A stretch of DNA of 64,000 bases from Amphiscolops sp. MND2022 (taxonomy: Eukaryota): contig OZ076417.1 of NCBI GenBank assembly GCA_964187785.1, positions 16,678,001 to 16,742,000 of the forward strand. Direction: 5' to 3'. Below the pieces are notes generated by a model. That model worked only from the letters and a program-made list of their open reading frames with translations, did no database searches and was not told where the DNA came from. A program made the position numbers and the translations under genes. Shown one piece after another: positions 2,559-61,513 of this stretch; within the stretch, counting starts at the first letter, position 1; every line of letters begins with the position of its first letter.

Positions 2559-2946
2559 TGTTACGAATGCTAACGGGGGAATTTACGTTCCCGAAACGTA
2601 CAGTTTTAGTAGGAGTTAGCGTTACACTGGTAGGAGTTTCTATTATTTCGTCACTGTTACTAGGTCTGTTTTCCAAACTTGAGGACCTTATTGCTAATAT
2701 GAGTTCTCTTTGTGATTGTTCTAGAAGGGTTTTTACTTCTTCAGTTATTTCCTTTCTCAGAGAAGTTTTTAGGTTTTCAAGAGATTGGTCTACCTGAGGA
2801 GTTAGTCCGTTAGTCGAAGTGCTAGGTTCTGAACTTACGTCTTCTCCTACGACGACACTGCTGACCCTCAAAAGATTCTCCTGCTGGTTGTCTTCGGTTT
2901 CTTCTACGCTCACTCCTGCTTTCCTTTTCTGGCTTCTTGTTGACAT
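2559..2946 (-). pseudogene. Copy of the gag N-terminus (129 codons) carried in the 3' LTR, reading out into flanking DNA (ORF track 2443-2946)
   Basis: MSTRSQKRKAG...SPVSIRN is identical to the start of 14284-15723, then diverges at the LTR boundary. Confidence 0.92.
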
Positions 2947-3873
2947 CTTGACTTTGAGATTGTAGTTTCAGAGAATTTATTTCAGAACTTGAAATTTAAC
3001 AGAACGTCATAAACAAGTGAGAGCAATATCCAAGATTTAAAAAACTCAAAGCCACTCCAGTCTATATATACCTTCCCCTATGTCACGTGACCACGCTAGC
3101 GTCACAAAGCTGTCGAAAAAATACCCACTACATCCGGTAAAATCACAATTATATCACGTCCGGCGTTCCTGACTCGAGCTTATTTTCAATGAAATCATAC
3201 TACTTGTGAACAAGGTTTGAACATAATTTCCGAATAAGGTGAGGTAGAATCTCCAACAAAGGAATGTCTCAGATGCAAATCACGACAGACCGGAAATGGA
3301 AGCGTTCCTAAAGTCATTTTTATCGAAACAACCCAACTTTGACTTCGTAAAGGCGGGAAAAAATCTCGATAAGTAGGAAGTGGTCACAAAATTTTCGCGG
3401 GAAAATAGAAACAAAAAATCGAGACGAATACGAGTCAAGAGACGCGGGAAATGACTCACACATAAGTGTGATAAATTTGGGGAAAGTACAAATATTCTGA
3501 GATTTATGGTTTTCCTCAAATACTACATTTTAGAGAAACATGAAATGAATTTTCATTTACAATAAGTCATTAAATGAGAAATCAAACAACAATATGTATA
3601 TATATATATATATGCACACATGAATGTCACGTTAGGACCCTAGTATAATGAACGTTAATTAATCGTTAATATCTGTTAACCAACATTATATGTAAACCGC
3701 ATTCACTGATTACTATTTTATAGCAGTTCCAACAGATCAATCATATTTATTCATCAACAAATATTGGATGTGGCATGGTTTTCCGTAATTTGAAACACTT
3801 GGGAAGCTCTCTTATTTCACAATGCCCTAAGGAAGTATCTTTCATTAATTGATCTTGTTATTCATATTAAGCA

Positions 3874-4225
3874 TGACGTAAGGTCGTCGTATGCGTGAGC
3901 CTAAAATTCGATTGTAATGTGACGTAAACTTGACGTAGACTTGAATTTTCTTTTAGTCAAAACGTGGCGTGGTAATTACGCTGGTTTTTACTCTAGTATA
4001 ATCTTAACAACTAGTTCAATATTGACAATAGCATTGTTTGGTCACAAGCATTGTGTGACGTAGCTTTGACGTAGACTCTTTCCTTTCATTCCGATTAGCC
4101 GTGACGTTTTATTGACGTAATTCATTCTTTCATGCGAGCGGTGCTAAATATTAATCTAGCGTAAACAAACGCTAGCGTGGTTATTGCGTTAAACTAATTT
4201 CTTAGCTGACTATTATTGACGTTAG
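3874..4225. promoter_or_regulatory. Cluster of TGACGT (CRE/ATF half-site) motifs in the element 1 LTR (also ~16640-16990); TATA-like TATATA on minus at ~3062-3069
   Basis: At least 8 TGACGT motifs in ~350 bp, including a duplicated module tgtgacgta-x-ttgacgtagac. The TATA-like element lies ~120 bp upstream of the gag ATG. Function is inferred. Confidence 0.5.
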
Positions 4226-4499
4226 ACATGCGGCAACGCGAGCGGTGTGACTGCACTTTACTTGGAGTGTGCACATAGTAATTGTTTTGGGGTAAACTGG
4301 TACGCATAAGTTTTATTTGTGACGCTTATAATTTCGTTTACAATAGCAGTTTGACAGCATGTTGGTTTTAGTTTTTCCTTGAATCGTTAATTTAAGATTA
4401 TGTTTAAGAGATATTCCCAAGTTGCTTCATATTATCGTTTTAGTTCTTTTAATTTTCGTTTAGTTTTCGTTTAGTTTGTTCAGTTTAGTTTTGAGTTGA

Positions 4500-5213
4500 T
4501 CAATTCCAACAGTACTTAGCTTTCATCAGGCATCCGTGTCCTCTTCCGAATTGTATTCGTCGACAAGAACAAGCCAGTCCGGGAGCGGACTGTGACAGGG
4601 GCACTGTCATGGGTCTGACGTACCTTGATTGGGTGGCGCAGGAAGGAGAGCTGCTTTTCCAGACCTGTGGGGCAAATCTGTTTGTTATTATCTCTTTGGA
4701 TTGTTCCGGGTCGATTCGTCTTGGGTAAGTTAAGTCGTTCAATGAGTTGTTTTCTTTCAAAACCACCCGACGTAATGGTCCCGGAGGAGTGATAAAGAGT
4801 TCTGCTGGTTCTGAATTTTCCTTGTTTTTTTCTAGTAAGTCCTGAGTGTCTAGCACGCTCTCATCTTCTTCATAGTAATCTGAAGACGACGGTTCCTGCC
4901 CTTGAACTATAAATCCTGATTGGCTTGACGGGCTGGCCGGGTTAGATGGAAGGAAATCTTTGTTGGATAATAACGAAATGAGGCTGGTCTCCTCACAGTC
5001 AAGTTTCATCCTTTTGCAGTTTTCTTGAACTATTTCCATTGATGAGTCCAATTCAGAGCCTTCGCTGACTGTTACGTCTAATGAAGAGATTGAAGGGTTG
5101 TATAGCTCTCTTCTTCTCGTTGTATTCACTTTCAGTGGTTGAGAGGATTCGTCTTTTGTTTCTTTCTCAGATTTGCTTGGTGAGACTAGGTCGATCAGTT
5201 CGACGACTTCCAT
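4500..5213 (-). CDS. Orphan 237-aa ORF of element 1, sense to gag-pol, Ser/Glu-rich, running ~97 bp into the 3' LTR
   Basis: Intact ATG-initiated ORF, low complexity and likely disordered, no recognisable domain. Confidence 0.55.
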   Translation of the reverse strand: MEVVELIDLVSPSKSEKETKDESSQPLKVNTTRRRELYNPSISSLDVTVSEGSELDSSMEIVQENCKRMKLDCEETSLISLLSNKDFLPSNPASPSSQSGFIVQGQEPSSSDYYEEDESVLDTQDLLEKNKENSEPAELFITPPGPLRRVVLKENNSLNDLTYPRRIDPEQSKEIITNRFAPQVWKSSSPSCATQSRYVRPMTVPLSQSAPGLACSCRRIQFGRGHGCLMKAKYCWN

Positions 5214-5434
5214 GCTTGAGGATTGTTTCAGTACTGCTAACTGTTTTTTAAATTCCGCTTAATAGGAATGATTTCCTTATCAATTTTCTTGATTTCCTTG
5301 ATTTATAAATTTTCTTTCATTTTGATTGGCTGTTCAGATTTCAAAGCAGATGTTAATCTTTCATCGCGTATTGGTTTAACATCCTTTTGACGAAAACATG
5401 ACGTAGATGCTTCTTTTTTAGATTTGTTGCTTTG
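5214..5434. promoter_or_regulatory. Putative internal bidirectional promoter
   Basis: Lies between head-to-head ATGs (5213 minus, 5435 plus). Palindromic ATTTATAAAT at 5301-5310 gives TATAAA on both strands. ATTGG (CCAAT) at 5325 and 5370, TGACGT at 5399. Confidence 0.45.
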
Positions 5435-8400
5435 ATGACTGAAAAACAATCTGCCTCATTTGTGCCTACGTCACAAGGTTTAGCTAGTGGAGAAGAGACG
5501 CAGTATGGTTTTTCAGAAGGCGATATAATAGTTAGCGAAATTGAGGAGCCTGCTGTTTCTGTATGTCCTGGTTAGTAAAACTTGAAGTCCATCTAGCCCA
5601 ATAACATCGTATTTTCGTCGATTGATCAGATCGCTAATCATACGTGTGGACTAGGTAAATAGCGCTTTCTTACTTCTTTCTTTCCAGGCCCTACTGTGGT
5701 CTCAGACGCTACCCAGCTTTCTCCCTTTGGCACTCCCTTAGGAACTACCTTGTCAAAGACTGTGCAAAAAGAACCTCCTCGGATTCGCGAGGAAATATCC
5801 CACCCTGGAGATTCTGACTTTCGTCACGAAACTGATAAAGAGACAGGTACTAGAGGCCAGGAGAAGGGCGTGACCACCAATGAGGATAGCGAGGAAGATA
5901 CTAGTCAGGACATACTTAGTTGCAAGCCTCAGACTTCAAAAGGAAAATGCAAACGCGGTTAGTATTTTAGTAATATATATGTGGTGTAGCTTACCTCTGC
6001 CATCGAAGTGTGTTCGGAATCGTTGGGTTTGTTTTTTTCCTTTTAGGTTTGTCCGAGTTTTTGTCGTCAAGTTCGGACGAAGAGAGTGTTGGTGATGACG
6101 TTCCGAACAGCCTTGATAAGCCTTTACTTTCGTCGATTGGAATTAGGACGCCTTCGCCTCTGGTGCGGCGGACGTCAAGGTCAACGTCTGCATCTGAGGA
6201 AGTTCTTCGAAAACGTTTTGATAGTTTATTGGGGTACTGTGTACTTTCTTGAATAAGAGGGCATTTCTTTCATGTCGTCTTTGTAGTGCCTGAAGATAGT
6301 GATTTCCTTGGTGGTACCCCTGTGAAGATGACGTCTGCGCAAGTGGTGAGTCTCGGGCGGCACATAGCGTCGGAAGTAGAGTCGTCTGCGGTGGATCCCA
6401 TTATTTCTAGTTAGTGTTTTCTTGAGTTTCTGTTTGAGGTTCACTTGGTTTTATTTTCTTTGGTATGACAGTATGTGTATCGAGGGTTGTTCTGTTATAG
6501 GTTTTGCTGAGTTTGCTAACAAGATTGGCGATTCTCTGGAGAATTTGGGAGTAAGCCCTAGAAAGAAGAAGAAGTACAGTTCTCGCAATCATCTTCGCAA
6601 GGACATGGTTGCCGGAGATGAGATTTTGAGCGAGTTTGTGTCTGGGTCAAAGAATGGGTTGACTACCTATTTCTTCTGCACTATGTGTGAACGCGACGTG
6701 TCGATGATAAGTCGTGGAGCGAGTGAGCTGGTTCGACATTTTACTTCAGAACGTCACTGGGAACGCGACGTGACGTATCGCGTCCATAAAGGGATGCCAG
6801 TGTTCAACCAGTTGCGCCAGCTGAAAACCTTGACTGACGAGGAGCTGAGTCAGTATCGCAGTCGACCTCTCAAAGAGAAAGCTGTGGGGTACCTTTTCCC
6901 CGAGGATAGACTTCCCAAACACAGTGAGATCCGTTCTCGAGTGCCGTTGTTGACGATGGTTAGCTGTTTGACGGAGGTCTTGCGCGGTGGTGGTAGTTAC
7001 ACCATGCTTCGTCGTTTGTGGGGCTTCTTTTGCGCCTCACTAGCTGAGAGTGATCCCTTGTACCGCGTGACGTGGAGTAAGCCAGAGACTCTGGTTAGTA
7101 TTGGAATTTGATTTTGTTTTCTTTGGCACAAGAGCAATTTAGTTATTTGTGTTTTTTTTGTAGTTTGGGTTTTTTTGTAGGCGCTGATTTGTGATGCTCT
7201 GTACCCGCGTGTGTTACGTTTTGTCTTCGGAGCAGTTAATCGTTTCAAAAGTTACAGTCTTGAGTTTAAAGAGCGGAGTGAGGGACTCTTTTGTTACGTT
7301 CGTACTTGGGATGGGGTGCGAATGAAGCGAGTATGTGTCCTGGTGGAGGCTCCTGATGTTCGATTGCCTCACTCTGAATTGCTGTGTTTGAGTCGTGTGA
7401 AGAGCAGTGTCAGCGGATCTCCATACCCTGTTGCGCTTGTTGGTGGGTCTTCGTCAGTTGTAAATTGTTTGAACGCAGTCCATGACGATGGTATGACCTT
7501 TGTGCCTTATCGCGCTTTCACTCACAGTGTTTTCTTAAAGTGTATACAGCAGGCACACCAAGATGTATTCGGTATGCTTGATATTGTTACCATTATTGAT
7601 TACTTGATGGTCCGTTTACGTACTGCTTTGTATGAGGAGTGGATTGATGGACATGTTACGTTGAAGCGTTGTGTTCGAGCTGGACAGGTGTCATTTGAAG
7701 ATCTGCGAGGAGTTATCGATGACATACGTTCACTGTGGCAACCCATTCAGCAGTTCGTTCGCTATACTGGACCTGCCCATCTCAAGGAAAGGCGGGATGA
7801 TGTAAGTAATCTCGTTGACGTACTTGTAACGTTTAGAGAGTGGCGGGGGTATTGTTTGGACGAATATATATTTCACTGATAGTGTCGTTTTGTTTTTTAG
7901 ACGCGGGGTACTGATTGGCTGATTTTTGCTGACAAGCTGATCCCCTTAAGACTCGGGCTTTTGCAGCTAGTTCTTGAGTCTTGTAAGTATGTTTCTGAGA
8001 CTGCTTGATTGTTTTTGTCTGATTGATTTGATGTTTCGTTTGGCTGTTCTATACTCGTTGATGGATCTTCTTTGGTGTTATTTTGGTATTACGGGAGATG
8101 TTGTTTTAGTCCGCGTGAGTTTCAAGAAGATGGCACAGCGTCGTGATGACTACGGGTTCCACTGCTACAGTGAGCTGTGTCACTTTGTGTATTGTTTGTT
8201 AAGCAAGACTCGGGCTGTTGGCTGCTTGCCTAGTATCCATCAATGGGATGCTTATATGAGTGTTGAGCCTGTGAAGAAAATGGTAGCTATTCCTGATGAT
8301 CTGTTCTTGGTAAACCATCCCTTTGGAGAGGAACTGTCGCAGGCCAAAATGAGTGGTGCCAGAGAGTTTCGTCAAGACTGCCGCAAATTTATGGATCAGC

Positions 8401-9392
8401 TTGTGGAGAAGATTCATAAGACAGTGTATTGTTCGTCGCCGGTCTCTCAAGGGCTTTATGCGTTTTGTCCAGAGTTGCTGTTTGAGGGGGATGACGTCAT
8501 TGTTTTCGACCTTTTTGCGAAGCTAGTTACTGGACTTGCCCGATGTGGTCTGCTGAGTGTTGACGAGGTTGCGACGAGCAAGGCTGAATTTTTGTCATAT
8601 GTTTTAGAAGCTCGACGACATCATTCAGAGAGTGGAGTTTCTGTTGGAGACATTAAAGATGTACGTGTGTATTTGCTGCGTCAGTATTCGTTTCAGTCAC
8701 GTCATTGTTTGACTAGAGTATTCCAGCTGTGTTGTTTGTTCATTGAATTACCTGATGAAGTTCCCGCTCCTATAGAGTTTGATTTCGGCGAGTGTTCAGT
8801 TCGTCCTGGAGTGTTGACCTCGTGTTTGCGTAGTGTCCAGTCTTTCGTCTCTTGTGCAGGTTACGAGCAGTCGACGTTTTTCACTGAAACTACTATGGAC
8901 CATGTGCGACGTTCCCTTGACGCAGCTGAGACATTTATGTCTAATGTGTCATTCAATCCTTGGGGTGACATTTGTGTTGGAGACAAGTCTGCTTTATTTG
9001 TGTCCTTGAATTCGGCTTATAGTACGTATCTGCAGGGGCGAGTGGAATCTGCTGAGTCGCATTATAAGACAGCTAATGTGACAAATCGTCAAGTTTTTGT
9101 TGCTACTCCAGTTGTTGAGGATACTACATTGCGTGCTTCGTCTGTGGAAAAGCCTGTGAGTACTGCCAGTTCGTCTAAAGTGAAGGATGATGGAGGAGCT
9201 CTGGTGCAGTCTATATTTGGTGGTAGTGCAAGTGGGTCCCAGCGAGGGGGTTCATTGAGTCGTCGCAGTAGTCGAGGTCAATCACGGAAGGTGGTATCAA
9301 AGTCACAAAAGTCGCAGAAGAGGTCTACTAAGTCGACTAAGGTGAAGAATGTTGGAATGAATAAACTTCTCGTTCGTGTTTGTGTTAATTGA
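5435..9392 (+). CDS. Antisense multi-exon gene inside element 1: zinc-finger, hAT-transposase-like protein (~1100 aa), probably catalytically inactive; one in-frame TAA at 5528-5530
   Basis: Exons 5435-5570, 5688-5957, 6047-~6230 (donor uncertain), 6287-6409, 6501-7093, 7181-7801, 7901-7982, 8110-9392. Introns have GTTAGT/GTAAGT donors, T-rich tracts and AG acceptors, and phases match at every checked junction. Zinc finger CTMC-x16-H-x5-H. Confidence 0.82.
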
Positions 9393-9476
9393 TGTTAGTT
9401 ATTTATACTCTGGTTTTTGGTATGGAATCAATTAAACATAGTCAAGTTGGTTCAGCTTGGACTCTTGAATTATATT

Positions 9477-12400
9477 TTATTCCTGAGTAGTAATTATGGC
9501 GTCTAGTCGTCTGAAGTCGGGTTTTGTGTTAGGTGTAGGGTTCGGTCGTAAGTTATGATTCGCTATTTTTCTGGGGTTGTATCCGACGTGAGTAGGGGAA
9601 TATGTAGGGGAGGCGGGGGGGCTTTCGATTGGAGGGGGATTTGTTATAAAGGGGTTATCTTCGACGTCCATGTTTACGTTAGTGAAATCTGGTTCAACTG
9701 CGGGCTCATCGTCATTTATGTCGTGAACTTCGTGTGGGCTGTTGTGTGTGAAGTTATGATTATAGTTTTGTTGGTTTTCTATTGGGACGGAGATGTCTGG
9801 TTCTTGTAAGTGGGGTTCCCAAGCTTGAGCGTACCATTCATTATGATGTATTATAACTTCTGGATCGGGTAAATAGTCCGTTGGTTTGACCGTGACGTCT
9901 GGTAGACGTTGAGCTGCTTTATAAATTCGTAGGCGTATTCTGTGAAGCGTTTGAGTGTATCGCGTGCCTAAGCGGCGTATAGTGTAGTTGTTGTTTGATA
10001 GGATTTTGATGACTATGAATGGTCCAGTCCAAATGCATTCATTAAACGCGAATTTCGTCGATTGGTTATCTGCTTTGGGGTTCAATACGTAGCAGTAGTC
10101 GTTGACTTTGAGGGGAGTTGCGTTAGCTTTTCTGTCGTAATAGCGCTTGTATTTGATGTAGGATACCATGAGATTTTCTTTGATTGTTGTTTTGATTTCC
10201 TCCGTTTGTTTCAGTAGTTGTTCTGCTAAGGCGGTGTTTTGTTGTCGTTGCCATTTTGGTTTCAGTCCCAGTTTGAGATCAAGTACGTTGTATGGGACGC
10301 GGGCATGGAACACTGTTGATGGTTCGCACCCAAGACTCTCGTGGTAGGTGGTGTTGTAGTTCATAACAGCTATCTGTACATAATTGTGCCACATTGATTT
10401 TCTTTCTCCTGTGGATATTTTTAGTGAAGTTTTAAGTGATGCATGTGTTCTTTCAAGGATGCCGATTGTTTGGGCGTGTTTTGTTGTGGCATGATGTATT
10501 TCGATGTCTAATACTTTAGTAATCTCCTGTATTACTTCTGCTCGGAATTAAGATCCTTTGTCAGAAATAATGCGTGTTGGCAGGTAGGCGTGTCTGGTCA
10601 TGACGTCTAAGATACATCGTCCTACAGTACGTGCTGACATGTTTTGTACTGGGTATGCAAAAAGGTAGCGTGAGAAAACGTCTATCATCGTCACTATGTG
10701 TTGGTAACCTGCAGAGCTTGGTAGGTTTGGTAATATGTCTATTTCGAGTATGTCTTCGGGTCCAAGTGAGAATTCATTAGGGTTGATCATTTTGGGTCTT
10801 ATTAGTCGCGTGTTGATTCTTTTGTGTTTGATGCAGTCTTGGCAGTTGGTGACCCATTGCTTTATGTGATTGGCGATGTCGGGGTAATAGTATTTCGCTC
10901 GACATTGTTGAATCATTTTGGTTATTCCTGGGTGTTTTCCTGAAGTTCCGTGCATAGTTTTAAGCAGCTCTGGTATTATGTGGGTTGGGAGGATGACTTG
11001 GTTATGGGTGACTTGACCACATTCACCGTAGTACTTGCGTACAAGTATTCCGTCTTTAAGGGTTATTCGGTTTTCGTGTTTGAGGAGTTTTTGTGCTTTT
11101 GGATCTGTCTGTAGTAAGTGTGCGTCATATTCTTCCTGTGATAGTTTTGCCTTTATGGTTTTCAGGACTGTATCTGCATCTTGTTCATTTCTGATGCGGG
11201 GGTTTTCAGTTATTGCTCCTAGGGAGTAAGAAAGTTTGTTTATTGGGATCATGGTGGCTTCTTGTATTGTTGCTGTGATTTCGTTTTGTTTGTCTGTGTG
11301 GGCTCGTTGTTTGGCTGACATTTTTCGTTGTAAGATTTCTTCTTCTGTTTCCAATCGTTCATCTGGTAGGAAAAATTGTTGTTCGTCATCAGCTACGTCA
11401 GTTGATTGCATGTTGATTTGTATGGGGGTCGTACGTATATCTTCCCTTATTGTGAGCTCTATTTTTTCTTTGGGTGTTATTTCGAGTCGGGAGAGGAAGT
11501 CTGCTGCGGTATCAAGTGTCCCTGCTACATGCATGATTCTGAAGTTAAATCGTAAGACGTAGTCACATGCGTTCCAAAGGGTCGGTGGTATTGCTTTGGT
11601 TTGGAAAAATCTTGTGACTGAGCGGTTGTCAGTCATAACGAGGGTTGGTAGCGTGGCCTCCCATAGTATATGGCTGTATTCAAGGAACGCGTGATATATT
11701 GCTAAGAATTCTTTGCAATATATGGACATTTTGAGTTGGGCCGGAGAGAATACCTTTGAGCCAAATGCTACTGGGGCGAATGTTTTTCTTTTGGAGGTTA
11801 GTTTTTTGTCATCTTTCTCTTCAATCATAAGTGCGTATCCTGATGTTCGGAAGCTGGCATCTGCCATGATGACGTATTGCCGTCCCTTGATCGGTTGTTT
11901 GAGGGCAAGGCCGCAGGCTTCTGTTAGGGCTGTATTGATTGCTTTGTAGTCTTCTAGTATGTCTTCCGTGATGGTTATTTTGTTGTCTATTTTGAGGAGT
12001 TCGTAAAATCTTCGGAGCTTTTCGGAGAGTCTGTGTATGTAGGTTCTGTAATAGTTTACAAATCCAATGTATCGCTGAACTTGCTTTTTGGATTTTGGGA
12101 ATCTGACGTTGGGTAGGAATTTTTTGATTTTGTGGTCTTGTGGTGCCACTCCTTGTGATGTGATCGTTCTTCCCAAAAACTCTACTTTGGTGACTCCAAA
12201 ATGGCATTTCTCAATAGTCAATTTCAGGCCTGCTTGTCTTATGCAGTCGAAAACAGCTTTGATGTTTCGTATAAGCTGCGTCACGGTATTGGCGGCAATG
12301 CCTATGTCGTCGACGTATTGAGCACATTGGTGAGCTTTTATTACTTTATCAAGGTATTCTCTCATAAAGCTGGAGAATTCTGAGAGGGCTCTGCTCAGTC

Positions 12401-14326
12401 CTTGGGCGAGTCGTTTATAGGCAAAGGTTCTGCTGGCAAAATTGAATGCTAGTAACTCCACTGAGCGTTGATCTGCCATTTGAAGGCAGTGATATGCTTG
12501 TGAGCAATCAAGTTTGCAGAAAAGTTCTTTCCCTGCAAGATGTTGCGCTGCGTCAGAGAGTGTGCTGATGGGGTGGTTGTTGTTGATATAGTCGTCAGAT
12601 ATCAAGGCATTTATTTTTCGTAAGTCTACGAGTAGTCTGAGTTTGCCGTTTGGTTTGCGCTGGGCGAATATTGGGCTTGCGTATTTGGAGAACGGTAAGG
12701 TTGTAATCATGCCATATCTATGCATCAAGGCAAGTTCGACTGTTAGGTCTTCTTTGAGGTTAATCGGTACGGGCAGGCTTTGTGTATACACTGGTGCTTC
12801 GGTTTTGGGTGTGAGTTTGACCTTGAAGTTGTTGTTGATGCCTATGTCTAGGCGATGTCTCGCAAAGATGTCGTTGTATTCGACGATCACATCTTCTAGT
12901 TGTTTCCGTTCTTCGCCTTGTATTAGTGATTGGTCCTTGTGAACTGGAACATGTTCAGGAACTTTTCTCGGGATTGTTGATCTGTTGTGGGATTAAGTTT
13001 TTCCTTTTCTTCTAGTTCCCTTATTTCTTTGATGACTCGTTGTTGTATTGGGGTGTGTTCATTTTCGTTTCCTGGATTTTCTGGGGTGGGGAACCAGAAA
13101 CTGTCTTCGTGATGATCATCTGTTTTCATTAGTTCTTGGACGTACGCCACTGCATCGTCATGGTCTTCGAAGATTTTGAGGGCAGCGACGTCAATTGGTC
13201 GTATGTGTTTTGTGTCTTCTGGTGTGAGTATTTGCATTTCGGCTATCTTCGTATTGGTAGATATTGTGTACGGACTTTCAGTGGTGTTGATGGCTCTTAT
13301 TTTGACTCTTTTGGAGTTTGTGGACGTTATTGCAGGGGCAACTATAATCTGGGCATTTTCATCAAATTGGGGTAGCGGTTGGATGGTGCCAGTCATTGTG
13401 TGTTCTGCGTTTGTTATGACGATTGCATTGATGGTGCTGGCTTGTTGTGATGGTATCGTTTGTGTTTCATTGGTTCTTACTTGCATGGTTTGTGGAGTGA
13501 ATTTTTTCATTTCATCCTTCATGGCTAGTGTCATTTCGATGTGGGGGAATGTAATTGTGCCATTTGCTGTGTCCAGTACTGCTTGGTGGTTCCTCATGAA
13601 GTTGAGTCCGACTAATGGGAAGGACGTTCTTGAGAGGACGACAAACGTGTCGGTAAAAGTGTATGAGCCGATATTGAATTGCATGTCGGCCGTTGCTATG
13701 GGTTGTTCTATTGTAGCATTTGCACATTCGATTTTGAATGGAGGTTGTGGATATTCTTTGATTATGCAGTTTTCGGTATTGTTGCGGATCATGGTGTAGT
13801 CAGACCATGAGATGGCGTTTATATATGCGCCAGAATCGACAAGTCCATCGAGGGTGATTTCTCCGAACTCTAGTGGCAGATAGAGCATGCGTCTTCGTTT
13901 TTTGAGGTTGATGGTAGACATGAGTGGTAGGTAGTGATCTTCTCCTTGGGTGGTTATGAATTCCTTGATGGAGTTGAGTGATGTTGGGAAGTTATCATGT
14001 TTTGGTGAGAAGTTGTCTTCGGGGCTGGGTGTGTTTGGTATTTCCCTTTCGGATGGATGAATTGTTGTCGTAGTTGATTCATGATTGCTGTCGTCGTAGT
14101 CGTTGAGTTTTGGTGACTTTGGTTGGGTTTCTTCGTGTTGGTTTCCATTCAGAGGTAAGGGTCGTTTAGTTGTCAAGTGTTCGTTATCATGATCAGGGGT
14201 TCCTGATGGGTGATTTGTGTGTTCATAGTTAGTGGCACTTGAGTGTGTTGATGGGGGGTCTTGGATGTTGAATGCCCTCGCGACTACTGTTTCCCCGAAT
14301 TGTAGTCGCGGCGTATTGAGTTTTTT
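9477..14326 (-). pseudogene. pol: Element 1 pol (PR-RT-RNase H-IN), interrupted by one 1-nt frameshift (~12935) and one premature TAA (10548-10550)
   Basis: PR LVDSGA; RT KLDCSQAYH and YVDDI; RH ADAS/TDN/ADFLSR; IN H-x5-H...C-x2-C, EIDIL, ISDKG, ILERT. ORF-track pieces 12923-14176, 10548-12890 and 9477-10394 join; the last two are in the same frame across SDKGS*F. Confidence 0.96.
14279..14326 (-). promoter_or_regulatory. Programmed -1 ribosomal frameshift signal (gag-pol)
   Basis: Slippery A AAA AAC (14320-14326) is in the gag frame, followed after ~9 nt by a perfect 9-bp stem CGCGACTAC/GTAGTCGCG. The -1 frame is open straight into ...EHLTTKRPL of the protease ORF. Confidence 0.88.
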
Positions 14327-15723
14327 GATTCGTCCGCTTCTGGTGTCGCCTTTATCTTATCTGGTTTTGGGGTTATGCTGGATTGCCTCTTAGGTCTTGG
14401 ATCGTTTGCGGCGTTGGCGCCGTTCCAGCAATCTTCCGTTTTGTGTGGTTTTCCACAGGTGACACATTGTGGTCTGGGAGGACGTGTATTGTTGTTCGAG
14501 CCGTTTTGTTTTCTTGTTTCTTGCCATTTATCTCTTTTGAGTTTTCGGCATTCTGCTTTGTAGTGTCCATATCGGGAGCAGTAGAAGCAAAGTCCTCGTT
14601 TGTTTTCTTTGTTGTGCGGAGTATTTGACGTTGGGGCGACGTTATTGAGGGGTACTAGCGTTATTTCGTCTGGTGTCCCTAGGCCGTTAAGCCGCATTTC
14701 CCTCTCGAGGTGGAGGACTATTTCATTATAGGGTTTGTCTTCCAGGTATGCTCGGTTGAGGATCTTTTGGACATGATCAGGCATCTTAGCGTATATCGCT
14801 TTATCGATAAATTGTTGTGCCTCAGGTCCAAATGCCTCCTTCGCTGTTTTTTGGAGTGAGTCTAGAAATTCGTGTAGCTTTTGTGTTGTTGGATCGAATT
14901 TTAGCGTGTCCCATTCGCAGCGGGCTTTTGCGACTGAGAGATAGTCTCCAAATCGTCGTTTGAAGGTCGTCATGATATCTTCTAAATTGTTTTTCTTGGT
15001 GTCGTCAAGGCTGCGGAAAGCTTGTAAAGCTTCGCCCCTTAAGAGCGAATGAAAATAATTGATTCTTTGAATTTCTGTTAAGTGTGGGTGCATTCTTATG
15101 TTGTTTCTGAAGAGATCTTCGAACAGTTCGAATTTTTCATTTTTGCCATCGAATGTTGGTAGGGACGTTGTGAGGGCCTTGGGCATTGGGGGCGTTGTAT
15201 TGGATTCAGTTTGTTTTGTTGAGGGTGGAGCAGCTTCAGGTAGGTTGGTTCGTTCTGTGAGTGGTGACTGGCTTTGGGTACGAGTTTTGGATTTTTTCTT
15301 AGGATTAATGGGGTCGGGGAGGACTCCTGTCACCATGTTACGAATGCTAACGGGGGAATTCACGTTCCCGAAACGTACAGTTTTAGTAGGAGTTAGCGTT
15401 ACACTGGTAGGAGTTTCTATTATTTCGTCACTGTTACTAGGTCTGTTTTCCAAACTTGAGGACCTTATTGCTAATATGAGTTCTCTTTGTGATTGTTCTA
15501 GAAGGGTTTTTACTTCTTCAGTTATTTCCTTTCTCAGAGAAGTTTTTAGGTTTTCAAGAGATTGGTCTACCTGAGGAGTTAGTCCGTTAGTCGAAGTGCT
15601 AGGTTCTGAACTTACGTCTTCTCCTACGACGACACTGCTGACCCTCAAAAGATTCTCCTGCTGGTTGTCTTCGGTTTCTTCTACGCTCACTCCTGCTTTC
15701 CTTTTCTGGCTTCTTGTTGACAT
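14284..15723 (-). CDS. gag: Element 1 Gag, 479 aa, intact
   Basis: Capsid-like PTFDGKNEKFELFEDLF...YFHSLLRGEA. Zinc knuckles CFYCSRYGHYKAEC and CVTCGKPHKTEDC. Confidence 0.95.
   Translation of the reverse strand: MSTRSQKRKAGVSVEETEDNQQENLLRVSSVVVGEDVSSEPSTSTNGLTPQVDQSLENLKTSLRKEITEEVKTLLEQSQRELILAIRSSSLENRPSNSDEIIETPTSVTLTPTKTVRFGNVNSPVSIRNMVTGVLPDPINPKKKSKTRTQSQSPLTERTNLPEAAPPSTKQTESNTTPPMPKALTTSLPTFDGKNEKFELFEDLFRNNIRMHPHLTEIQRINYFHSLLRGEALQAFRSLDDTKKNNLEDIMTTFKRRFGDYLSVAKARCEWDTLKFDPTTQKLHEFLDSLQKTAKEAFGPEAQQFIDKAIYAKMPDHVQKILNRAYLEDKPYNEIVLHLEREMRLNGLGTPDEITLVPLNNVAPTSNTPHNKENKRGLCFYCSRYGHYKAECRKLKRDKWQETRKQNGSNNNTRPPRPQCVTCGKPHKTEDCWNGANAANDPRPKRQSSITPKPDKIKATPEADESKNSIRRDYNSGKQ
15323..15335 (-). 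other. Primer-binding site TGGTGACAGGAGT (tRNA-Leu-like), embedded in gag coding sequence
   Basis: Directly abuts the 5' LTR end (...TAACA|TGG). One mismatch to the usual animal tRNA-Leu(CAG) PBS TGGTGTCAGGAGT as I recall it; tRNA identity is inferred. Confidence 0.8.
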
Positions 15724-17346
15724 CTTGACTTTGAGATTGTAGTTTCAGAGAATTTATTTCAGAACTTGAAATTTAACAGAACGTCATAAACAAGTGAGAG
15801 CAATATCCAAGATTAAAAAAACTCAAAGCCACTCCAGTCTATATATACCTTCCCCTATTTCACGTGACCACGCTAGCGTCACAAAGCTGTCGAAAAAATA
15901 CCCACTACATCCGGTAAAATCACAATTATATCACGTCCGGCGTTCCTGACTCGAGCTTATTTTCAAAGAAATCATACTACTTGTGAACAAGGTATGAACA
16001 TAATTTCCGAATAAGGTGAGGTAGAATCTCCAACAAAGGAATGTCTCAGATGCAAATCACGACAGACCGGAAATGGAAGCGTTCCTAAAGTCATTTTTAT
16101 CGAAACAACCCAACTTTGACTTCGTAAAGGCGGGAAAAAATCTCGATAAGTAGGAAGTGGTCACAAAATTTTCGCGGGAAAATAGAAACAAAAAATCGAG
16201 ACGAATACGAGTCAAGAGACGCGGGAAATGACTCACACATGTGTGATAATTTTGGGGAAAGTACAAATATTCTGAGATTTATGGTTTTCCTCAAATACTA
16301 CATTTTAGAGAAACATGAAATGAATTTTCATTTACAATAAGTCATTAAATGAGAAATCAAACAACAATATGTATATATATGCACACATGAATGTCACGTT
16401 AGGACCCTAGTATAATGAACGTTAATTAATCGTTAATATCTGTTAACCAACATTATATGTAAACCGCATTCACTGATTACTATTTTATAGCAGCTCCAAC
16501 AGATCAATTATAATTAATCATCAACAAATATTGGATGTGGCATGGTTTTCCGTAATTTGAAACACTTGGGAAGCTCTCTTATTTCACAATACCCTAAGGA
16601 AGTATCTTTCATTAATTGATCTTGTTATTCATATTAAGCATGACGTAAGGTCGTCGTATGCGTGAGCCTAAAATTCGATTGTAATGTGACGTAAACTTGA
16701 CGTAGACTTGAATTTTCTTTTAGTCAAAACGTGGCGTGGTAATTACGCTGGTTTATACTCTAGTATAATCTTAACAACTAGTTCAATATTGACAATAGCA
16801 TTGTTTGGTCACAAGCATTGTGTGACGTAGCTTTGACGTAGACTCTTTCCTTTCATTCCGATTAGCCGTGACGTATTATTGACGTAATTCATTTTTTCAT
16901 GCGAGCGGTGCTAAATATTAATTAGCGTAAACAAACGCTAGCGCGGTTATTGCGTTAAACTAATTTCTTAGCTGACTAATTTTGACGTTAGACATGCGGC
17001 TGCACTTTACTTGGAGTGTGCACATAGTAATTGTTTTGGGGTAAACTGGTACGCATAAGTTTTATTTGTGACGCTTATAATTTCGTTTACAATAGCAGTT
17101 TGACAGCATGTTGGTTTTAATTTTTCCTTGAATCGTTAATTTAGGATTATGTTTAAGAGATATTCCCAAGTTGCTTCATATTATCGTTTTAGTTCTTTTA
17201 GTTTTCGTTTAGTTTTCGTTTAGTTTGTTCAGTTTAGTTTTGAGTTGATCAATTCCAACAGTACTTAGCTTTCATCAGGCATCCGTGTCCTCTTCCGAAT
17301 TGTATTCGTCGACAAGAACAAGCCAGTCCGGGAGCGGACTGTGACA
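15336..17346 (-). repeat. Element 1 5' LTR (2011 bp)
   Basis: Direct repeat of 2559-4597, followed by TSD GAGGT. Confidence 0.97.
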
Positions 17347-17830
17347 GAGGTTGATTGATTTAGTTTACAAAGTCTGTCTGCATGTGTTTTTAAATGAATC
17401 CAAATTTATCTTCTTCCCGTCGAGCTATCCCCGGCGGACAGAGCGGCAAGGAAATGCCGTGTGGTGTTTTCGGAGGGCGCGATGCGTCTGCGTGACGCCG
17501 ACACCCCCATCAACTGGCCCGTTCTTTGTGAACTCTTCATTTCCCAATCCATTAGGCTTTTGTGAATGATAATTTCAACAGATAGGCCAATTCAGTTTCT
17601 TTGTAATCCACAGCTTGAATTTTCGGAAGCGTCTTCTCCAGAAATGTGTTTTAGTGATTGGACGGAGCTTTCTTCCTCCCTCGACGGTGCTGCTGCCGTC
17701 CATCCCGCTTACTTTTCTATCAATCCCGTAGCTGTTCCGGCAACCTCTGTTTTTACCAATTATTAAAAAACTTCAAGCTTCCAGAAACTTTAAAACATAC
17801 AAATAGGTAATATCAATAAAAAAAAATACA

Positions 17831-25434: not shown

Positions 25435-27900
25435 CTAATGCTCTTTTTTAGAAGGAGCGTCTTTTAGTAGGTCATTGATCATGTCAGGTGTAAGAATGTT
25501 AGAAAAACCATGTGCAATAGAACTAAAAAAGGTTATATTTTGTTCTAAATTAATTTTGATGGAAATTGTTTTGAAAACTTTGATAGGAAGTGTTACAAAT
25601 GCTTGTATGAAAAGGAATGTGGAGAAATATATTCCACATTGTGTAAGAATGTAGCATGGATAACCAAATAGGGTTATGATTTCATCAGCAAACCATGATT
25701 GTGTAAAAAGAGGAGTAAGATTTAAGAGTTTGTCATGTAGTCCAATACGAGGTGTGTTATATGGATTTGTTTGAGAAATGTGTGTATCAGAGTAGTCTGA
25801 AGTATTGGAAGAAATGAATGAATAACTAAGAGTTTTTCCAAGTAATTGAAGTGTTTCATCAGAATGTTTTGAAAAGAGAATTCTGTTCCAAAATTGATCT
25901 AGTACTGCATTTGAAAATATACCAGCATCTTGAGCTGTAAATGTAATTGGGCGTATTGTAGTTTTGATTTCATTAGGAGTAAACATAAGAGGAGGTTTGC
26001 GTTTTATAGGTTCTGGGCAAAGAATATAAAAGTCTTGGTCATCAGTATCAGGGTCAAGTTCTGTAATGTTTCGTGGGTTACTTTCACAAGGCATAGGAGT
26101 AGCATAGTCATATGTTTGTCTTGTAATAGGATCTAAATACATGAGAGTGTCTTTGTAGTGCATAGGAATTCTATCAAAGCAACGATCTGCTTTGTATAAA
26201 GGTGCTAAAGTGTGAGGACAGTCATTAATCCAAGCTGTAGAGCCTCCGACATAGAGGAAGTTACTTCGATTACCCGTTAGGAGGAATCCTGCGAGTTGAG
26301 GGTTTTGTACTACATAGCAAGTATTGTAAGGAGTTGATTACGTTCCAATTCACAGATAGTATGAAGTGTATTTAATTCTTGTACAGTCATCGACCAAAAG
26401 ACATGGTTGATAGTGTAATCTATTTCAGTTTTAATATGAGCATCATAGTTAATGGTTGCAAAGTGGTTAGATACATTCAATGCTGGAAAACATAGTGTTT
26501 TGTTGAAGAGTCCAATACTATTTTACCAGAGACTTATTCAATTATTATAGATTGAGGGTTAGGTTGTCCTGTATGCATGTTGAAACCTTCTCGATAAGTA
26601 ACAAAAAGATCTGAATATTGTGGAATATAAAGAGGTTCAGGTTTGCCACAAAATGTTTGAGTGTGTGGAAAGAGTTCAAAACCTGAGAGGCTTGGGTTAT
26701 GTGGGTTTTGTGTATGAGGTGCATGAATGTACGGAAAGGAAGTGCCTTCATTCCAGAAGACGTATCAGTTTTATTTGGTAATGAAGAGTGAATAAAAGAG
26801 TCAATTTCAATCCAATATCTATCATCTATTTTAGTCATGCGTCCAACAAAGTCTTGTAGTGTGAAGAATAAACAAAAATCGTCACAAAACCAGACAAGTG
26901 TAAAGGCGTTTTGGTAGTAGATGTACAAAAACCATCGGCAAAGTAACATGGGAGAGCGTGACCATCTATTACCATGAGGTTTTCTGTATTATCATTTGTA
27001 AGTTTTACTTCAGAGACGGAGAGTCTCCAACTAACTAGATTCACTTCAAATTGGTGATGTGCTGGACAATTGTGAAAAGGGTTGTTTTTTGGGTCATAAA
27101 TCCGAGTCTTATCGTCGGGCATATAGGTGAATGTACCAGTATACATTATATTAAAGTTATAGACTGTAAAAGGAGTTTGATTTTGTTTAAGTTTCTCTTA
27201 GAAGTAATGATCTTCTAAGAGTGTAAAAGTACGGTTATAATTAAAGTTGTTTAATATTTTATTATTTGTACCATTAAGGTGTCTCATAAGATTTTTACAT
27301 CCTAATGGATAAAGAGTGATAGGAAGAGGTAATGTATTGTGGTTCCATACGGTTCGGCCAACACGTCTGTATTTAACTGAGCCTTGAAAACTTTTTTTTT
27401 CTTTCTGAGCATAAGCTTCACACCTGAAAGCTTTAACGCGTTTAGTTTTAGCTCGAACATAAACTCGGGCTCGAACATTAGCATTTTGAATGTTTGAAGG
27501 AGCTTCAGTACATGGTTTTACATTTAGTAAATTGAATTGTCTCAAATTATGTTGTTTTTCATAATCATAGTGGTAACCCATAAGATTTGTAAGATTTGGA
27601 TCATCTGGAGGAAGATAATTATCTGTATCCGTAAGTTCAATAGGTATTGTATGAGTATATAAAGTGTTACAAAAGAGGGTGTAAAATATTATTTGTTCAT
27701 AGTTTGTGAACATATATGATTTAGAAAGATGTAGAGTATTTGAGGCCTGAATAAGGGTTGTAAAACATGATTTGCCATAAATTAAATCTGGAAGAGTAGG
27801 ATCTTCATTAAAATCTACGTATGTGTCTATGAAACGAGCAGGTGTAGTTTTGTGTTCAAATTTCAATTCTAGGCTTGGATGTTGAAGTCTTTTCGGTTCA
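25435..27900 (-). pseudogene. env: Element 2 env: class III fusion-protein-like (herpes gB / chuvirus G-like) glycoprotein, fragmented
   Basis: YHYDY..HNLRQFNLLNVKPC; CPAHH; LPCYFADGFC; GNRSNFLYVGGSTAWINDC; CFDRIPMHYKDTLMYLDPITRQ....PC. N-glycosylation sequons (NGT, NRT). C-terminal hydrophobic segment FGYPCYILTQCGIYFSTFLFIQAFV. Family call is from remembered motif spacing. Confidence 0.7.
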
Positions 27901-28359
27901 AGTTCTTTTCGTTTTTCAGAAAGTGTATCGTTGTTGTGTATAAAACGTTCTGCAAGAAGTGTAAAACGAGGATCAAATCTGGGTTCGTGACTCCATCAAC
28001 ACGTAATGGATAGTCAGCAAAATTAGGAGTAGGTGGTCTAGAGTTATCAACTGTGAAATATTCTGGAAGGCGTACTGTAGGTTGTACAGGAGTAGGTACT
28101 AAAACTTCGGAGATACGTTACCAGATAAATATGCGGTTTGTACGTCAGATGATATTAAAGATGCAGTGTCAACACCAGATGTAAAATAGGATTGTGGAAT
28201 AAATTCAGAAGAGTGTGTTTTAGAAGGTTGTGGTTGAGCGTGTTGTCTTAAAAGGCGAGAAGCTGAACTACTGGATAGTGCATTAAATTTGAGAGTAGAT
28301 GTATCAGAACTGAGTCTTCGATTAGGTAGAGGACGAAGATTATTTCGATGATGTGGTTT

Positions 28360-44528: not shown

Positions 44529-44863
44529 TGATATACTTGTGAATTATATTCGATCATTTACCTATAATCTATATTCGATCATTCCCCTCCCTCCTCTTCG
44601 CTTGATGTCCAGATTAGATCTATGTTTTCTGAATATTAATGTAATCAAGCCATAGCTAATTTGTATTCAATACTATACTCAATATTGTCAAGCATCAATC
44701 TGATTTATATCCTGACACAACGAAATTAACTCTTCACCATCAAGTTGTCTTCCCTTGAGACCTTACACTGCAGCTCTGTTAGCGTCTCTTTAAAGTACTG
44801 CCCCTTTTGAAATAATTTATCTAAATTCTGATAGCTTCCAATCACCCAAAACAAAAAAGTACT
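44529..44863 (+). repeat. Element 3 5' LTR (~335 bp)
   Basis: tgatat...cgatcatttacctataat...caaaacaaaaaagtact aligns with 61185-61513. Confidence 0.88.
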
Positions 44864-44924
44864 TTAACCACAATCCTTTTTCTTTCCTTCCTTTTTCCTC
44901 TTAATACAATATTTTCTTCTTTCC

Positions 44925-45253
44925 GTACTAATCACAAAAGTGATTCGATATCTTTCATATCGGTACGCAATTCTTCTTTTCTTCTGTACTAATCACAAAC
45001 AGAAGTGATTCGACATAACGTCGGTAACCATTCAAAGTGGTTCGACCTCGTAGTCGGTACAAACAATCCTTCTGTACTAATCACCAAAAAATCATTCAGC
45101 CTTGAAGCTGGTACAACCATTATTCTGTACTAATCACCATTGAATTGATTCAGCTACATGCTGGTACATCAACTCTTTCGTACTAATCAAGTTGATTGGA
45201 CTTTTGTTGGTACTCTCTAGTGCTAACCTCTTGATTCGACCTTTTGTCGGTAC
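44925..45253 (+). repeat. Array of ~7 structured repeat modules in the element 3 5' leader
   Basis: Consensus GTAC-TAATCAC-loop-GTGATT-CGAC-loop-GTCG-GTAC. Units at 44925, 44986, ~45026 (partial), 45074, 45127, 45180 and 45220. Confidence 0.9.
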
Positions 45254-61130: not shown

Positions 61131-61184
61131 CCAACTCTTGATAACCTACCTTGGTATAACATTTTTTTTCAAAACCCGGTCGGA

Positions 61185-61513
61185 TGATATGCTTGTAAAA
61201 TATATACGATCATTTACCTATAATATATATTCGATCATTCACCCTCCCCCCTCTTTGCTTGATGTCTAGATTAGATCTATGTAATCTGAACATTATTGTA
61301 ATCAAGCTAATTTGTATTCAATACTATACTCAATATTGTAAAGCATCAAACTGATTTAAATCCTGACACAACAACATTAACTCTTCACTATCAAGATGTC
61401 TTCCCATAAGACCTAATACTGCAGCTCGGTTAGCATCTCTTTGAAGTACTGTCCCGTTTGAAATAATCTATCTAAAATTTGATAACTTCCAACCACCCAA
61501 AACAAAAAGTAGT
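61185..61513 (+). repeat. Element 3 3' LTR (~329 bp)
   Basis: Aligns with 44529-44863. Confidence 0.88.

Follow-up and report, generated by a model that had tools for sequence, protein, structure and literature searches.

Retroelements are expected to carry cargo without introns, since their life cycle includes an RNA stage that is, or can be, spliced, and the locus described here raises the question of how a gene with many introns can reside within an LTR retrotransposon, whether it belongs to that element and what its product might do there. The locus lies in a stretch of 64,000 nucleotides from the genome of Amphiscolops sp. MND2022, which was analysed as a whole and is called the window below. 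The window is rich in TEs; a Pfam search of those of its ORFs that lie outside TEs gave no matches.

Positions 2559-17346 of the window are occupied by a complete minus-strand Ty3/Gypsy-like LTR retrotransposon of 14.8 kb, the parts of which, apart from the antisense gene, are the following.

2554-2558, no strand: target-site duplication (TSD) GAGGT, left copy; the identical pentamer is at 17347-17351, both copies abutting the LTRs
2559-4597, minus strand: 3' LTR, a 2040-nt direct repeat matching 15336-17346, with TG..CA ends
4500-5213, minus strand: ORF3, an accessory sense-strand ORF of 237 aa that extends into the 3' LTR
5214-5434, no strand: 220-bp spacer between the divergent ORF3 and antisense gene, a candidate bidirectional promoter
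9477-14176, minus strand: pol (PR, RT, RNase H, integrase), split in this copy into ORFs 9477-10394, 10548-12890 and 12923-14176
14284-15723, minus strand: gag (DUF1759 / Retrotrans_gag, by Pfam), the ORF starting within the 5' LTR
15310-15335, minus strand: primer-binding site, with a PBS-like TGG start immediately after the 5' LTR, read from the sequence
15336-17346, minus strand: 5' LTR, pairing with 2559-4597
17347-17351, no strand: TSD GAGGT, right copy

The two LTRs (about 2.04 kb, TG..CA termini) are 97.6% identical. The domain order on the minus strand is gag-PR-RT-RNase H-IN, PR and gag lying upstream of RT and the integrase after it; in one of the pol ORFs, Pfam recognises RVT_1 (78-243), RT_RNaseH (310-442) and Integrase_H2C2 with rve (635-780). 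Paired TG..CA LTRs with a 5-bp TSD and this domain order fulfil two criteria for a Ty3/Gypsy-type (Metaviridae-like) element; the sequence upstream of the 3' LTR, checked for a polypurine tract, is not purine-rich. In a sister copy, L001, pol is a single ORF of 1564 aa, and the element of the window is likely to be a slightly decayed copy of a Ty3/Gypsy-like lineage with four genes, namely gag, pol, ORF3 and the antisense gene. ORF3 was found, and could be aligned, in all loci examined (length range 216-301 aa); its dN/dS against the copy L006 is 0.16, and a Pfam search of it gave no match and no known domain. The spacer contains, at about 5320-5334, a CCAAT-type motif (TTTGATTGGCTGTTC) that is retained in L006 and in a further copy, L007, while its flanks have diverged; that the spacer acts as a bidirectional promoter is possible, promoter function being inferred only from this conservation.

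The fourth gene (5435-9392) is located between pol and the 3' LTR on the plus strand, antisense to gag-pol, and is composed of eight exons and seven introns.

5435-5570, plus strand: exon 1, with ATG at 5435 and an open frame; its donor GTTAGT is conserved in L001, L006 and L007
5688-5957, plus strand: exon 2, after intron 1 (5571-5687); the junction keeps the frame and the splice sites are conserved
6047-6223, plus strand: exon 3, after intron 2 (5958-6046)
6287-6409, plus strand: exon 4, after intron 3 (6224-6286), identified by alignment with L001, L006 and L007
6501-7093, plus strand: exon 5, after intron 4 (6410-6500), encoding an NLS-like stretch of basic residues and a CCHH zinc finger, putatively of BED type
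7181-7801, plus strand: exon 6, after intron 5 (7094-7180), encoding a predicted RNase H-like core, probably without the catalytic acids
7901-7982, plus strand: exon 7, after intron 6 (7802-7900)
8110-9392, plus strand: exon 8, after intron 7 (7983-8109), encoding the predicted helical insertion domain, the C-terminal portion of the predicted fold and a basic tail (Ser/Lys)
9363-9368, plus strand: putative polyadenylation signal (AATAAA) for the antisense transcript; it is conserved, just past the ancestral stop, in both L001 and L006

A preliminary description, made from the letters alone, had reported about eight exons encoding about 1100 aa and six well-defined introns; both statements held, the spliced frame comprising 1094 codons without internal stop and all six introns being confirmed by splice sites and frame, with the count corrected to seven by the addition of 6224-6286. 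The six (introns 1, 2 and 4-7) start with GTTAGT or GTAAGT, end with a pyrimidine-rich AG and keep the frame. The segment 6224-6286 had also been considered as coding, a reading that was rejected: it gave an in-frame TGA at 6250, and the aligned copies show a conserved GTTAGT...TAG intron. In L001 this intron contains a 16-nt indel, and the frame is open only when it is excised. The only lesion that had been claimed, a TAA at 5528, does not lie in the reading frame and is no lesion. The two real defects of the window copy are elsewhere: the donor of intron 3 is weakened (GTTTAT vs GTTAGT in L001), and the ancestral stop at 9342-9344 is lost (GTG here vs TAG in L001 and L006), which adds 16 residues. 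The stop codons of pol and of the antisense gene are only 84 nt apart. Since L001 and L006 have frameshifting indels in exon 2 and the N-terminal 235 residues of the protein are poorly conserved, the exon model is less certain in its 5' part.

When other copies are compared, the spliced structure proves to be far beyond chance expectation. Three other copies retain the dinucleotides at donors and acceptors, and frame-preserving splice sites are retained over a dS of 1-2; identity among copies is 54-67% in the intron bodies vs 75-90% in the exons, and the introns of the compared copies contain indels that are not multiples of three. In addition, an uninterrupted homologue of 890 aa (E 9e-70) is colinear across the predicted junctions, and of the three core junctions two are crossed without a gap. 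Splicing itself, as well as the use of the promoter and of the poly(A) signal, is inferred from sequence conservation only, there being no transcript evidence.

The frame is maintained by selection at the protein level. The dN/dS of the antisense gene is 0.098 against L006 and 0.15 against L007; for its core the value is 0.073, compared with 0.044 for pol and 0.16 for ORF3. The dS is about 1.0 and equal across the antisense core, pol and ORF3, and the three genes have therefore diverged together. ORF integrity and dN/dS, which the preliminary description had proposed to examine with the help of other copies, gave an open frame of 1094 codons and values of 0.07-0.10 (0.15 in the case of L007).

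The claim that a multi-exon antisense gene resides inside an LTR retrotransposon also held, on the strength of a TSD-flanked element, a second copy and nine loci. L001 is an independent full copy between paired LTRs, 98.2% identical over 14.8 kb and flanked by a different TSD of its own (GGGGG); the duplications of both copies are G-rich. Nine other loci, belonging to diverged families (26-98% protein identity), have the same four-gene layout, with the antisense gene in the same place and orientation; absence of the region from other family copies, which would have refuted the claim, was not observed. The trees of pol and of the antisense protein are concordant at every well-supported split, and the antisense gene and gag-pol have a common strand-specific base skew, as would be expected because of long replication within the element. 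The intron content has a history of its own: L002 shares three core intron positions with the window gene at 40-50% protein identity, and sister clades differ, one of them having three introns in the 3' core that the other lacks; 5' introns occur in both. Strict co-divergence does not account for everything; it leaves unexplained the contrast between L002 and L008, the gag-pol regions of which are near-identical (84% nucleotide identity) whereas their antisense genes are barely alignable.

The lineage is abundant. The antisense gene is present in hundreds of copies; its protein clusters comprise between some tens and more than a hundred near-identical members, located on different contigs, those of pol up to about 1,500, and exon 8 matches 770 representative clusters in the homologue search. 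For pol, the best 120 of the 355 matches, and for the antisense protein all 39 full-length ones, are confined to ENA assemblies (mainly ERZ25074608, also ERZ1742291), so that standard annotation would miss the exons or call them fragments of host genes.

As to the nature of the protein, sequence comparison gave no indication: Pfam searches of each exon, of full-length homologues and of all 38 alignment members (E up to 10) found nothing, including Dimer_Tnp_hAT and DUF4371, and sequence and profile searches of the PDB with the antisense protein gave no matches. Structure prediction was more informative. The AlphaFold2 model of the homologue P0223 (pLDDT 80) has as its 12 best matches in the PDB Hermes transposase in every case (probability 0.99-1.00; TM about 0.45-0.52, normalised to Hermes), and its best match in the viral structure library BFVD is a Pandoravirus hAT-family protein (probability 1.00). 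Exon 6 of the window gene, modelled with AlphaFold2, has the RNase H-like topology beta-beta-beta-alpha-beta-alpha-beta, again with Hermes as best PDB match (probability 0.82-0.89). Structure prediction and fold search thus recover the hallmark of hAT transposases, an RNase H-like core into which a large alpha-helical domain is inserted. Before the core, in exon 5, lies a C-x2-C-x15-H-x5-H pattern, conserved in the window, L002, P0108 and P0223; despite this conserved CCHH pattern, the Pfam zf-BED model does not score on the antisense proteins. The protein is therefore likely to have the fold of a hAT transposase similar to Hermes, preceded by a CCHH finger that may be of BED type; its hAT ancestry rests on fold similarity alone, without support from sequence profiles. 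A conserved D or E, sought in two alignments in strand beta-1 and after beta-4, is absent from both positions; the DDE catalytic acids have probably been lost, with the proviso that this was judged by secondary-structure position and column conservation, without residue-level superposition.

The best explanation of these observations, to which we assign a probability of about 0.72 (jointly with the four-gene reading of the element), is that the gene is an anciently captured, catalytically dead hAT transposase, kept as an accessory gene of the element; its function is proposed by analogy only. According to this reading, the gene would go back to a single capture that preceded the separation of the known families, and would since have co-diverged with pol under purifying selection, which would make it an accessory gene and not a passenger. 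Its own promoter, in the 220-bp spacer and head-to-head with ORF3, would drive an antisense transcript that the host would splice, with polyadenylation at the AATAAA adjoining the 3' end of pol. The introns would survive reverse transcription because its template is the complementary RNA strand, in which they are no substrates for splicing; the earlier proposal that antisense orientation preserves them is in this respect supported. The protein is envisaged to enter the nucleus and to bind DNA sequence-specifically, by analogy with catalytically dead hAT derivatives, and may regulate transcription or chromatin of the element, or tether its integration. A bolder formulation, that a large and abundant LTR lineage has domesticated a DNA transposase as a dead DNA-binding factor, which could remain multi-intron through its antisense placement, is one that we favour by a narrow margin.

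Among the alternatives, the one that survives best, although unlikely, is that the protein is an active transposase or nuclease using non-canonical residues, which would provide a second DNA-level mobility or a cleavage activity. In its favour, the full hAT-like domain set is kept under strong purifying selection and a few acids located within the RNase H-like core or close to it, namely E56 and E66 of exon 6, are conserved; against it, the canonical beta-1 and post-beta-4 positions have no conserved acid, both full copies have integrase-type TG..CA ends and 5-bp TSDs rather than the 8-bp TSDs of hAT elements, and there are no TIRs.

It is very unlikely that the selected product is the antisense transcript itself, pairing with genomic RNA towards its 3' end in regulation or small-RNA pathways, with an incidental reading frame. 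Such a transcript would run towards the 3' end of pol and probably extend into it, given the short distance between the two stops, and regulation by antisense RNA has been proposed for plant elements (PMC7264820); nevertheless, a frame of 1094 codons at a dN/dS of 0.07-0.10 requires protein-level selection, and the same holds for the confidently predicted fold, the conserved finger and the frame-preserving splice sites over dS 1-2.

Less probable still, and largely refuted, is the chance insertion of a separate hAT DNA transposon into this retrotransposon copy or a recent ancestor, as a passenger without role. The protein fold is indeed hAT-like, and nesting is frequent in DNA as rich in TEs as the window. 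Around the gene (5214-9476), however, no terminal inverted repeats bracket it, the only gene-spanning pair lying within coding sequence (78% complementary), and no 8-bp TSD flanks it; a nested insertion is further contradicted by the same position and orientation at nine loci of 26-98% protein identity, by the tree congruent with pol and the equal dS, by a dN/dS of 0.07-0.10 upheld across family divergence, and by the absence of conserved catalytic acids. The earlier suspicion of a hAT was thus right as regards ancestry, as far as the predicted fold shows, and wrong as regards an independent insertion. That the gene is a host gene between two solo LTRs, or a mis-assembly, and no mobile unit exists, is suggested solely by the oddity of introns within a retroelement and is all but excluded, since 5-bp TSDs flank the whole 14.8-kb unit at two different genomic sites and the near-identical members of the protein clusters, tens to over a hundred, lie on different contigs.

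The accessory-gene reading implies that a seven-intron gene has been stably inherited within a retrotransposon, across families with saturated synonymous sites. Engineered retroviral vectors place intron-containing cassettes in reverse orientation, and the window gene would be the natural counterpart of this trick. One class of mobile elements would have taken over an enzyme from another class and turned it into an accessory protein without catalysis, a role assigned by analogy only, and the repertoire of retroelement accessory genes would be widened beyond env-like and plant TRP28-type ORFs. If the bolder formulation is true, the lineage is a natural high-copy system for the study of intron loss and gain in a gene travelling by reverse transcription, the difference in intron content between clades offering a direct handle on RT-mediated intron loss vs intron gain.

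The claim that the system was previously undescribed held only in part. In plant Ty3/Gypsy elements of the Tat lineage (Retand, Grande gene23, RIRE2; TRP28 domain), an antisense ORF is located between pol and the 3' LTR, is conserved across families, is presumed to have its own promoter and is predicted to have a DNA-binding or nuclear role (PMC7264820, PMC11963269); the window gene shares the position, the orientation and the conservation within families. Whereas the plant proteins have Pfam Transposase_28 (PF04195) or no domain, the window protein has no Transposase_28 match; introns are not mentioned for the plant ORFs in these reviews and number seven here; the plant hosts are flowering plants, and the window gene encodes about 1100 aa with a hAT-like predicted fold and has an additional sense ORF3 beyond it. 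The layout is thus a variant of a known architecture, its novelty lying in the hAT-like fold and the multi-intron structure, neither of which was described for an antisense gene of an LTR element in the literature searched.

Antisense genes are also found in retroviruses (cited in PMC11963269). In deltaretroviruses, HBZ of HTLV-1 and APH-2 of HTLV-2 are opposite-strand genes with a spliced main mRNA, encoding nuclear regulators of the element's transcription; HBZ is initiated within the 3' LTR, and its product, from a gene with a single intron, is a small bZIP protein. Exon 1 of the window gene, by contrast, lies about 840 nt internal to the edge of the 3' LTR, with ORF3 between, and the gene has seven introns and is apparently transposase-derived, no bZIP domain being found in its protein by Pfam. 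A transcript start in the 3' LTR, as in HBZ, is not met by the first coding exon at 5435; in the absence of RNA data, a non-coding exon further upstream remains possible. Capture of genes 3' of pol by LTR elements is known from the ORF3s of bdelloid Juno, Vesta and TelKA and from env-like ORFs (PMC5408684), which are presented there neither as antisense nor as containing introns (the word "intron" is absent from that paper).

With hAT transposases (Hermes, Ac, hobo) the window protein shares, by prediction, the RNase H-like core, preceded by a putative N-terminal BED-type finger and interrupted by an all-helical insertion domain; unlike them, it has no conserved DDE, TIRs, 8-bp TSD or similarity to hAT Pfam models, and is mobilised by reverse transcription. 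Its closest functional analogues may be host proteins: DAYSLEEPER is hAT-derived, has lost catalysis, is under purifying selection and presumably acts through DNA binding and oligomerisation (PMC3499209), and the ZBED family and DREF/BEAF-32 are likewise domesticated, non-catalytic host proteins of hAT origin. These domesticated proteins are encoded by single-copy host genes, whereas the window gene exists in hundreds of copies and its beneficiary is apparently another mobile element.

Self-comparison of the window identified a direct repeat of 2040 nt, 97.6% identical, at 2559-4598 and 15336-17347; at base level the repeats span 2559-4597 and 15336-17346, start with TG and end with CA, and the pentamer GAGGT is found on both sides of the pair. 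The whole is a 14.8-kb Ty3/Gypsy-like LTR retrotransposon in minus orientation, which carries, on the strand opposite to gag-pol and between pol and ORF3, a further gene (the antisense gene). Since pol is split into three ORFs, the window copy is mildly decayed. The first 388 nt of the gag ORF lie within the 5' LTR (15336-15723), and, on reading the sequence, a conventional polypurine tract is not visible, the sense strand beside the 3' LTR (4598-4625) not being purine-rich.

Features of the element and of its antisense gene (window coordinates)
4500-5213, minus (sense): ORF3, 237 aa, no known domain, between the antisense gene and the 3' LTR
5435-5570, 5688-5957, 6047-6223 and 6287-6409, plus: exons 1-4 of the spliced frame
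6501-7093, 7181-7801, 7901-7982 and 8110-9392, plus: exons 5-8 of the spliced frame
5568-5578, 5955-5965, 6407-6417 and 7091-7101: preferred-donor sites, donor on plus, branch-point-like on the sense genomic RNA
9363-9368, plus: conserved AATAAA just past the ancestral stop
9477-10394 and 10548-12890, minus: reverse transcriptase, RNase H and integrase (domain matches)
12923-14176, minus: protease-like region (ORF)
14284-15723, minus: gag, DUF1759 and Retrotrans_gag (domain matches)
directly after the 5' LTR of the minus-strand element: primer-binding site, TGG-initiated (sequence reading)

The end of the integrase (9477) lies about 4.9 kb from the 3' LTR (4597), and on the plus strand between the two, long stretches are open, first in one frame and then in another. 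The preliminary description had joined these segments by short introns, every one of which was confirmed: they start with GTTAGT or GTAAGT, end with a pyrimidine-rich AG and link the frames correctly. An initial model in which 6224-6286 was coding left an in-frame TGA at 6250, and was dropped after alignment with three other copies had shown this segment to be a seventh intron: its GT and AG are conserved, its length varies, and in L001, a sister copy, it contains a 16-nt indel. The eight-exon coding sequence is 3285 nt long (1094 codons), with no internal stop; the TAA at 5528 does not lie in the reading frame, so that the earlier claim of a lesion there failed. Two defects are found in the window copy: the donor of intron 3 is GTTTAT (GTTAGT in L001), and the position of the stop codon is occupied by GTG (TAG in L001 and in the more diverged L006), so that the tail is 16 residues longer.

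The splice model is backed by independent lines, all inferred from sequence conservation and none from transcripts. Two diverged copies, L006 and L007, were compared with the window, to which their nucleotide identity is about 80% and about 68%; the corresponding values are 75-90% and 55-76% for exons, and 54-67% and 44-57% for introns; intron indels are not multiples of three, and all donor and acceptor dinucleotides are kept. Nei-Gojobori estimates of dN/dS between the window and L006 are 0.098 for the whole gene (dS 1.03) and 0.073 for exons 5-8 (dS 1.16), that for the whole gene against L007 being 0.15 (dS 1.92); exons 1-4 are weakly conserved (dN/dS 0.24), with frameshifts in some copies. 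In L002, a locus whose antisense protein is only 40-50% identical, tblastn segments split at the same three core junctions. Finally, P0108, a full-length homologue encoded by a single uninterrupted ORF of 890 aa, is colinear with residues 277-1076 of the initial spliced model (E 9e-70), its alignment being gapless across the exon 5/6 and 7/8 junctions, with one 7-residue gap near the 6/7 junction.

Two further observations concern the introns. Intron 1 (5571-5687) exceeds its flanking exons in conservation, both in L006 (91% against 81% and 75%) and in L007 (79% against 62% and 55%); it may contain a sequence that regulates either the antisense gene or, on the opposite strand, ORF3. Reverse-complemented, the preferred donor GGTTAGTA reads as the branch-point consensus TACTAAC with a C after it; at the positions listed above, the sense genomic RNA therefore bears branch-point-like sites, with a subsequent CAG as well at 5568-5578 and 7091-7101; these may be coincidental, or else used for sense-strand splicing.

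That copies at other loci carry the gene, a check for which the preliminary description asked, is borne out by L001 and eight diverged loci. L001, a second full copy, matches the element of the window at 98.2% identity along 14,841 nt, but has its own TSD (GGGGG) and unrelated flanking DNA; the eight further loci, belonging to diverged families and retrieved by exact-protein look-up (one from a different sample, ERZ1742291), all share one layout, in which the homologous gene directly follows the 3' end of pol, on the strand opposite to gag(DUF1759)-pol, and a sense ORF of 199-301 aa separates it from the LTR. The pol and antisense-protein trees, both inferred by maximum likelihood, are congruent at every well-supported split, and dS between the window family and L006 is about 1.0 each for pol, ORF3 and the antisense gene, which therefore diverged together. 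Throughout the internal region (~6 kb to 16 kb of the window), G and T are uniformly in excess on the plus strand, irrespective of coding direction, and the skew is absent from LTRs and flanks; it possibly reflects a strand-specific mutational bias tied to replication through sense RNA, and its extension over the antisense gene fits long replication of the gene as part of the element.

An independent hAT insertion nested in the element, which terminal inverted repeats around the gene would have supported, is rejected on the strength of the layout shared by nine loci, the congruent trees, the equal dS, the skew and the absence of bracketing inverted repeats, which were looked for and not found. 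A host gene or a mis-assembly is excluded by the second full copy with its own TSD and by the same layout in diverged families. The antisense gene as a resident of the element has nonetheless not always diverged in step with pol: two related loci, L002 and L008, have 84% nucleotide identity in gag-pol, whereas their antisense genes can be aligned only over short patches of 70-74%, the ratio of antisense-protein to pol tree distance being about 18 (2-4 elsewhere); this contrast points either to episodic fast evolution or to module exchange.

Neither Pfam (any exon or any of 38 homologues) nor PDB sequence and profile searches with the antisense protein gave a match. With E up to 0.001, a profile search of 1.84 billion representatives returned 770 clusters, of which almost all are exon-sized fragments, and a word-based search with P0108 yielded 39 full-length relatives of 490-890 aa, all from ENA assemblies, in clusters of up to 104 near-identical members. 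An AlphaFold2 model of the full-length homologue P0223 (same assembly as L001), built on a 38-row alignment including the window exons, has a mean pLDDT of 80, most of residues 210-770 being above 90. Its 12 best Foldseek matches in the PDB are chains of the Hermes hAT transposase (probability 0.99-1.00, E down to 7e-5, TM 0.45-0.52 normalised to target), after which probability falls to 0.15; in a viral structure library only one match is strong, that to a Pandoravirus protein with a hAT-family annotation (probability 1.00). Exon 6 of the window, folded separately with 17 homologous segments, is predicted to adopt the RNase H-like order beta-beta-beta-alpha-beta-alpha-beta (pLDDT 72), and its best matches are Hermes (0.82-0.89), then other RNase H-fold enzymes. 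Upstream of the core a C-x2-C-x15-H-x5-H motif, preceded by a basic stretch, is conserved; the pattern is that of a BED finger, although Pfam gives no score. No conserved acidic residue was found in beta-1 or after beta-4, the sites of the first two hAT catalytic aspartates, as inferred from secondary-structure position without superposition. The protein is thus likely to derive from a hAT transposase and to lack catalytic activity, the fold being a model prediction without sequence-profile support.

The antisense placement of the gene would explain the survival of its introns in the element, since it is the complementary strand that serves as template for reverse transcription. Introns are not the whole reason for this orientation, however: in a sister clade (L003, L004, L005, L010) the gene is still antisense, though its 2.6-kb core is a single exon. 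Since the 5' part there retains clear GTAAGT...YAG introns, the clades differ by loss or gain of three 3' introns; one option is that introns were lost with a 3' bias, by recombination with a reverse-transcribed copy of the spliced mRNA.

ORF3, found in all nine related loci (dN/dS 0.16), extends about 100 nt into the LTR; its expression could involve a subgenomic splice or an internal promoter, neither being established. It lies head to head with the antisense gene across a 220-bp spacer, where a CCAAT-type motif, TTTGATTGGCTGTTC, is kept in three families amid diverging surroundings, raising the possibility, inferred from sequence alone, of a common bidirectional promoter. The antisense transcript would end at the AATAAA, next to the 3' end of pol, with which it would probably overlap. 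Domesticated hAT proteins act as sequence-specific DNA-binding factors, and by analogy the predicted product (zinc finger, basic clusters, hAT oligomerisation-type fold, no active site) is closest to these; our best guess, unsupported by expression or binding data, is a nuclear factor that would regulate transcription or chromatin of the element itself, or guide its integration.

The remainder of the window holds other repeats. Positions 20881-40885 are occupied by another LTR retrotransposon, about 20 kb long, whose 535-nt LTRs are 97.6% identical. Its gag and RNase H are encoded on the minus strand; it also contains 1-kb repeats (28359-33081), an extreme GC skew (+0.4) and a minus-strand ORF (25435-26163) with a weak match, below the Pfam cut-off, to the Monjiviricetes fusion glycoprotein family. 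A 17-kb block (44529-61516), bounded by 335-nt repeats 87.6% identical, has a GC skew between -0.3 and -0.6 and probably represents an older element in opposite orientation; its plus-strand ORFs have no Pfam match, nor do the minus-strand ORFs of a tandem duplication at 463-2309 (unit ~924 nt, 92.8% identical).

Among known systems, the nearest architectural parallel is found in plant elements of the Tat lineage (Retand, Grande, RIRE2), whose additional antisense ORF lies between pol and the 3' LTR and is often predicted to be DNA-binding (PMC7264820, PMC11963269); such ORFs, however, carry a TRP28 domain or none, and neither paper mentions introns in them. Deltaretroviral HBZ-type genes are spliced and antisense, but are LTR-initiated and encode small bZIP proteins. 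The full-text literature searched, which did not cover Repbase or Dfam, contains no report of an LTR element with an antisense gene that is hAT-like or has several introns. The gene described here thus belongs to a known kind, the antisense accessory gene of an LTR retrotransposon; what is new is its transposase ancestry, as judged by predicted fold, its seven introns, as inferred without transcripts, and the four-gene layout of the element.
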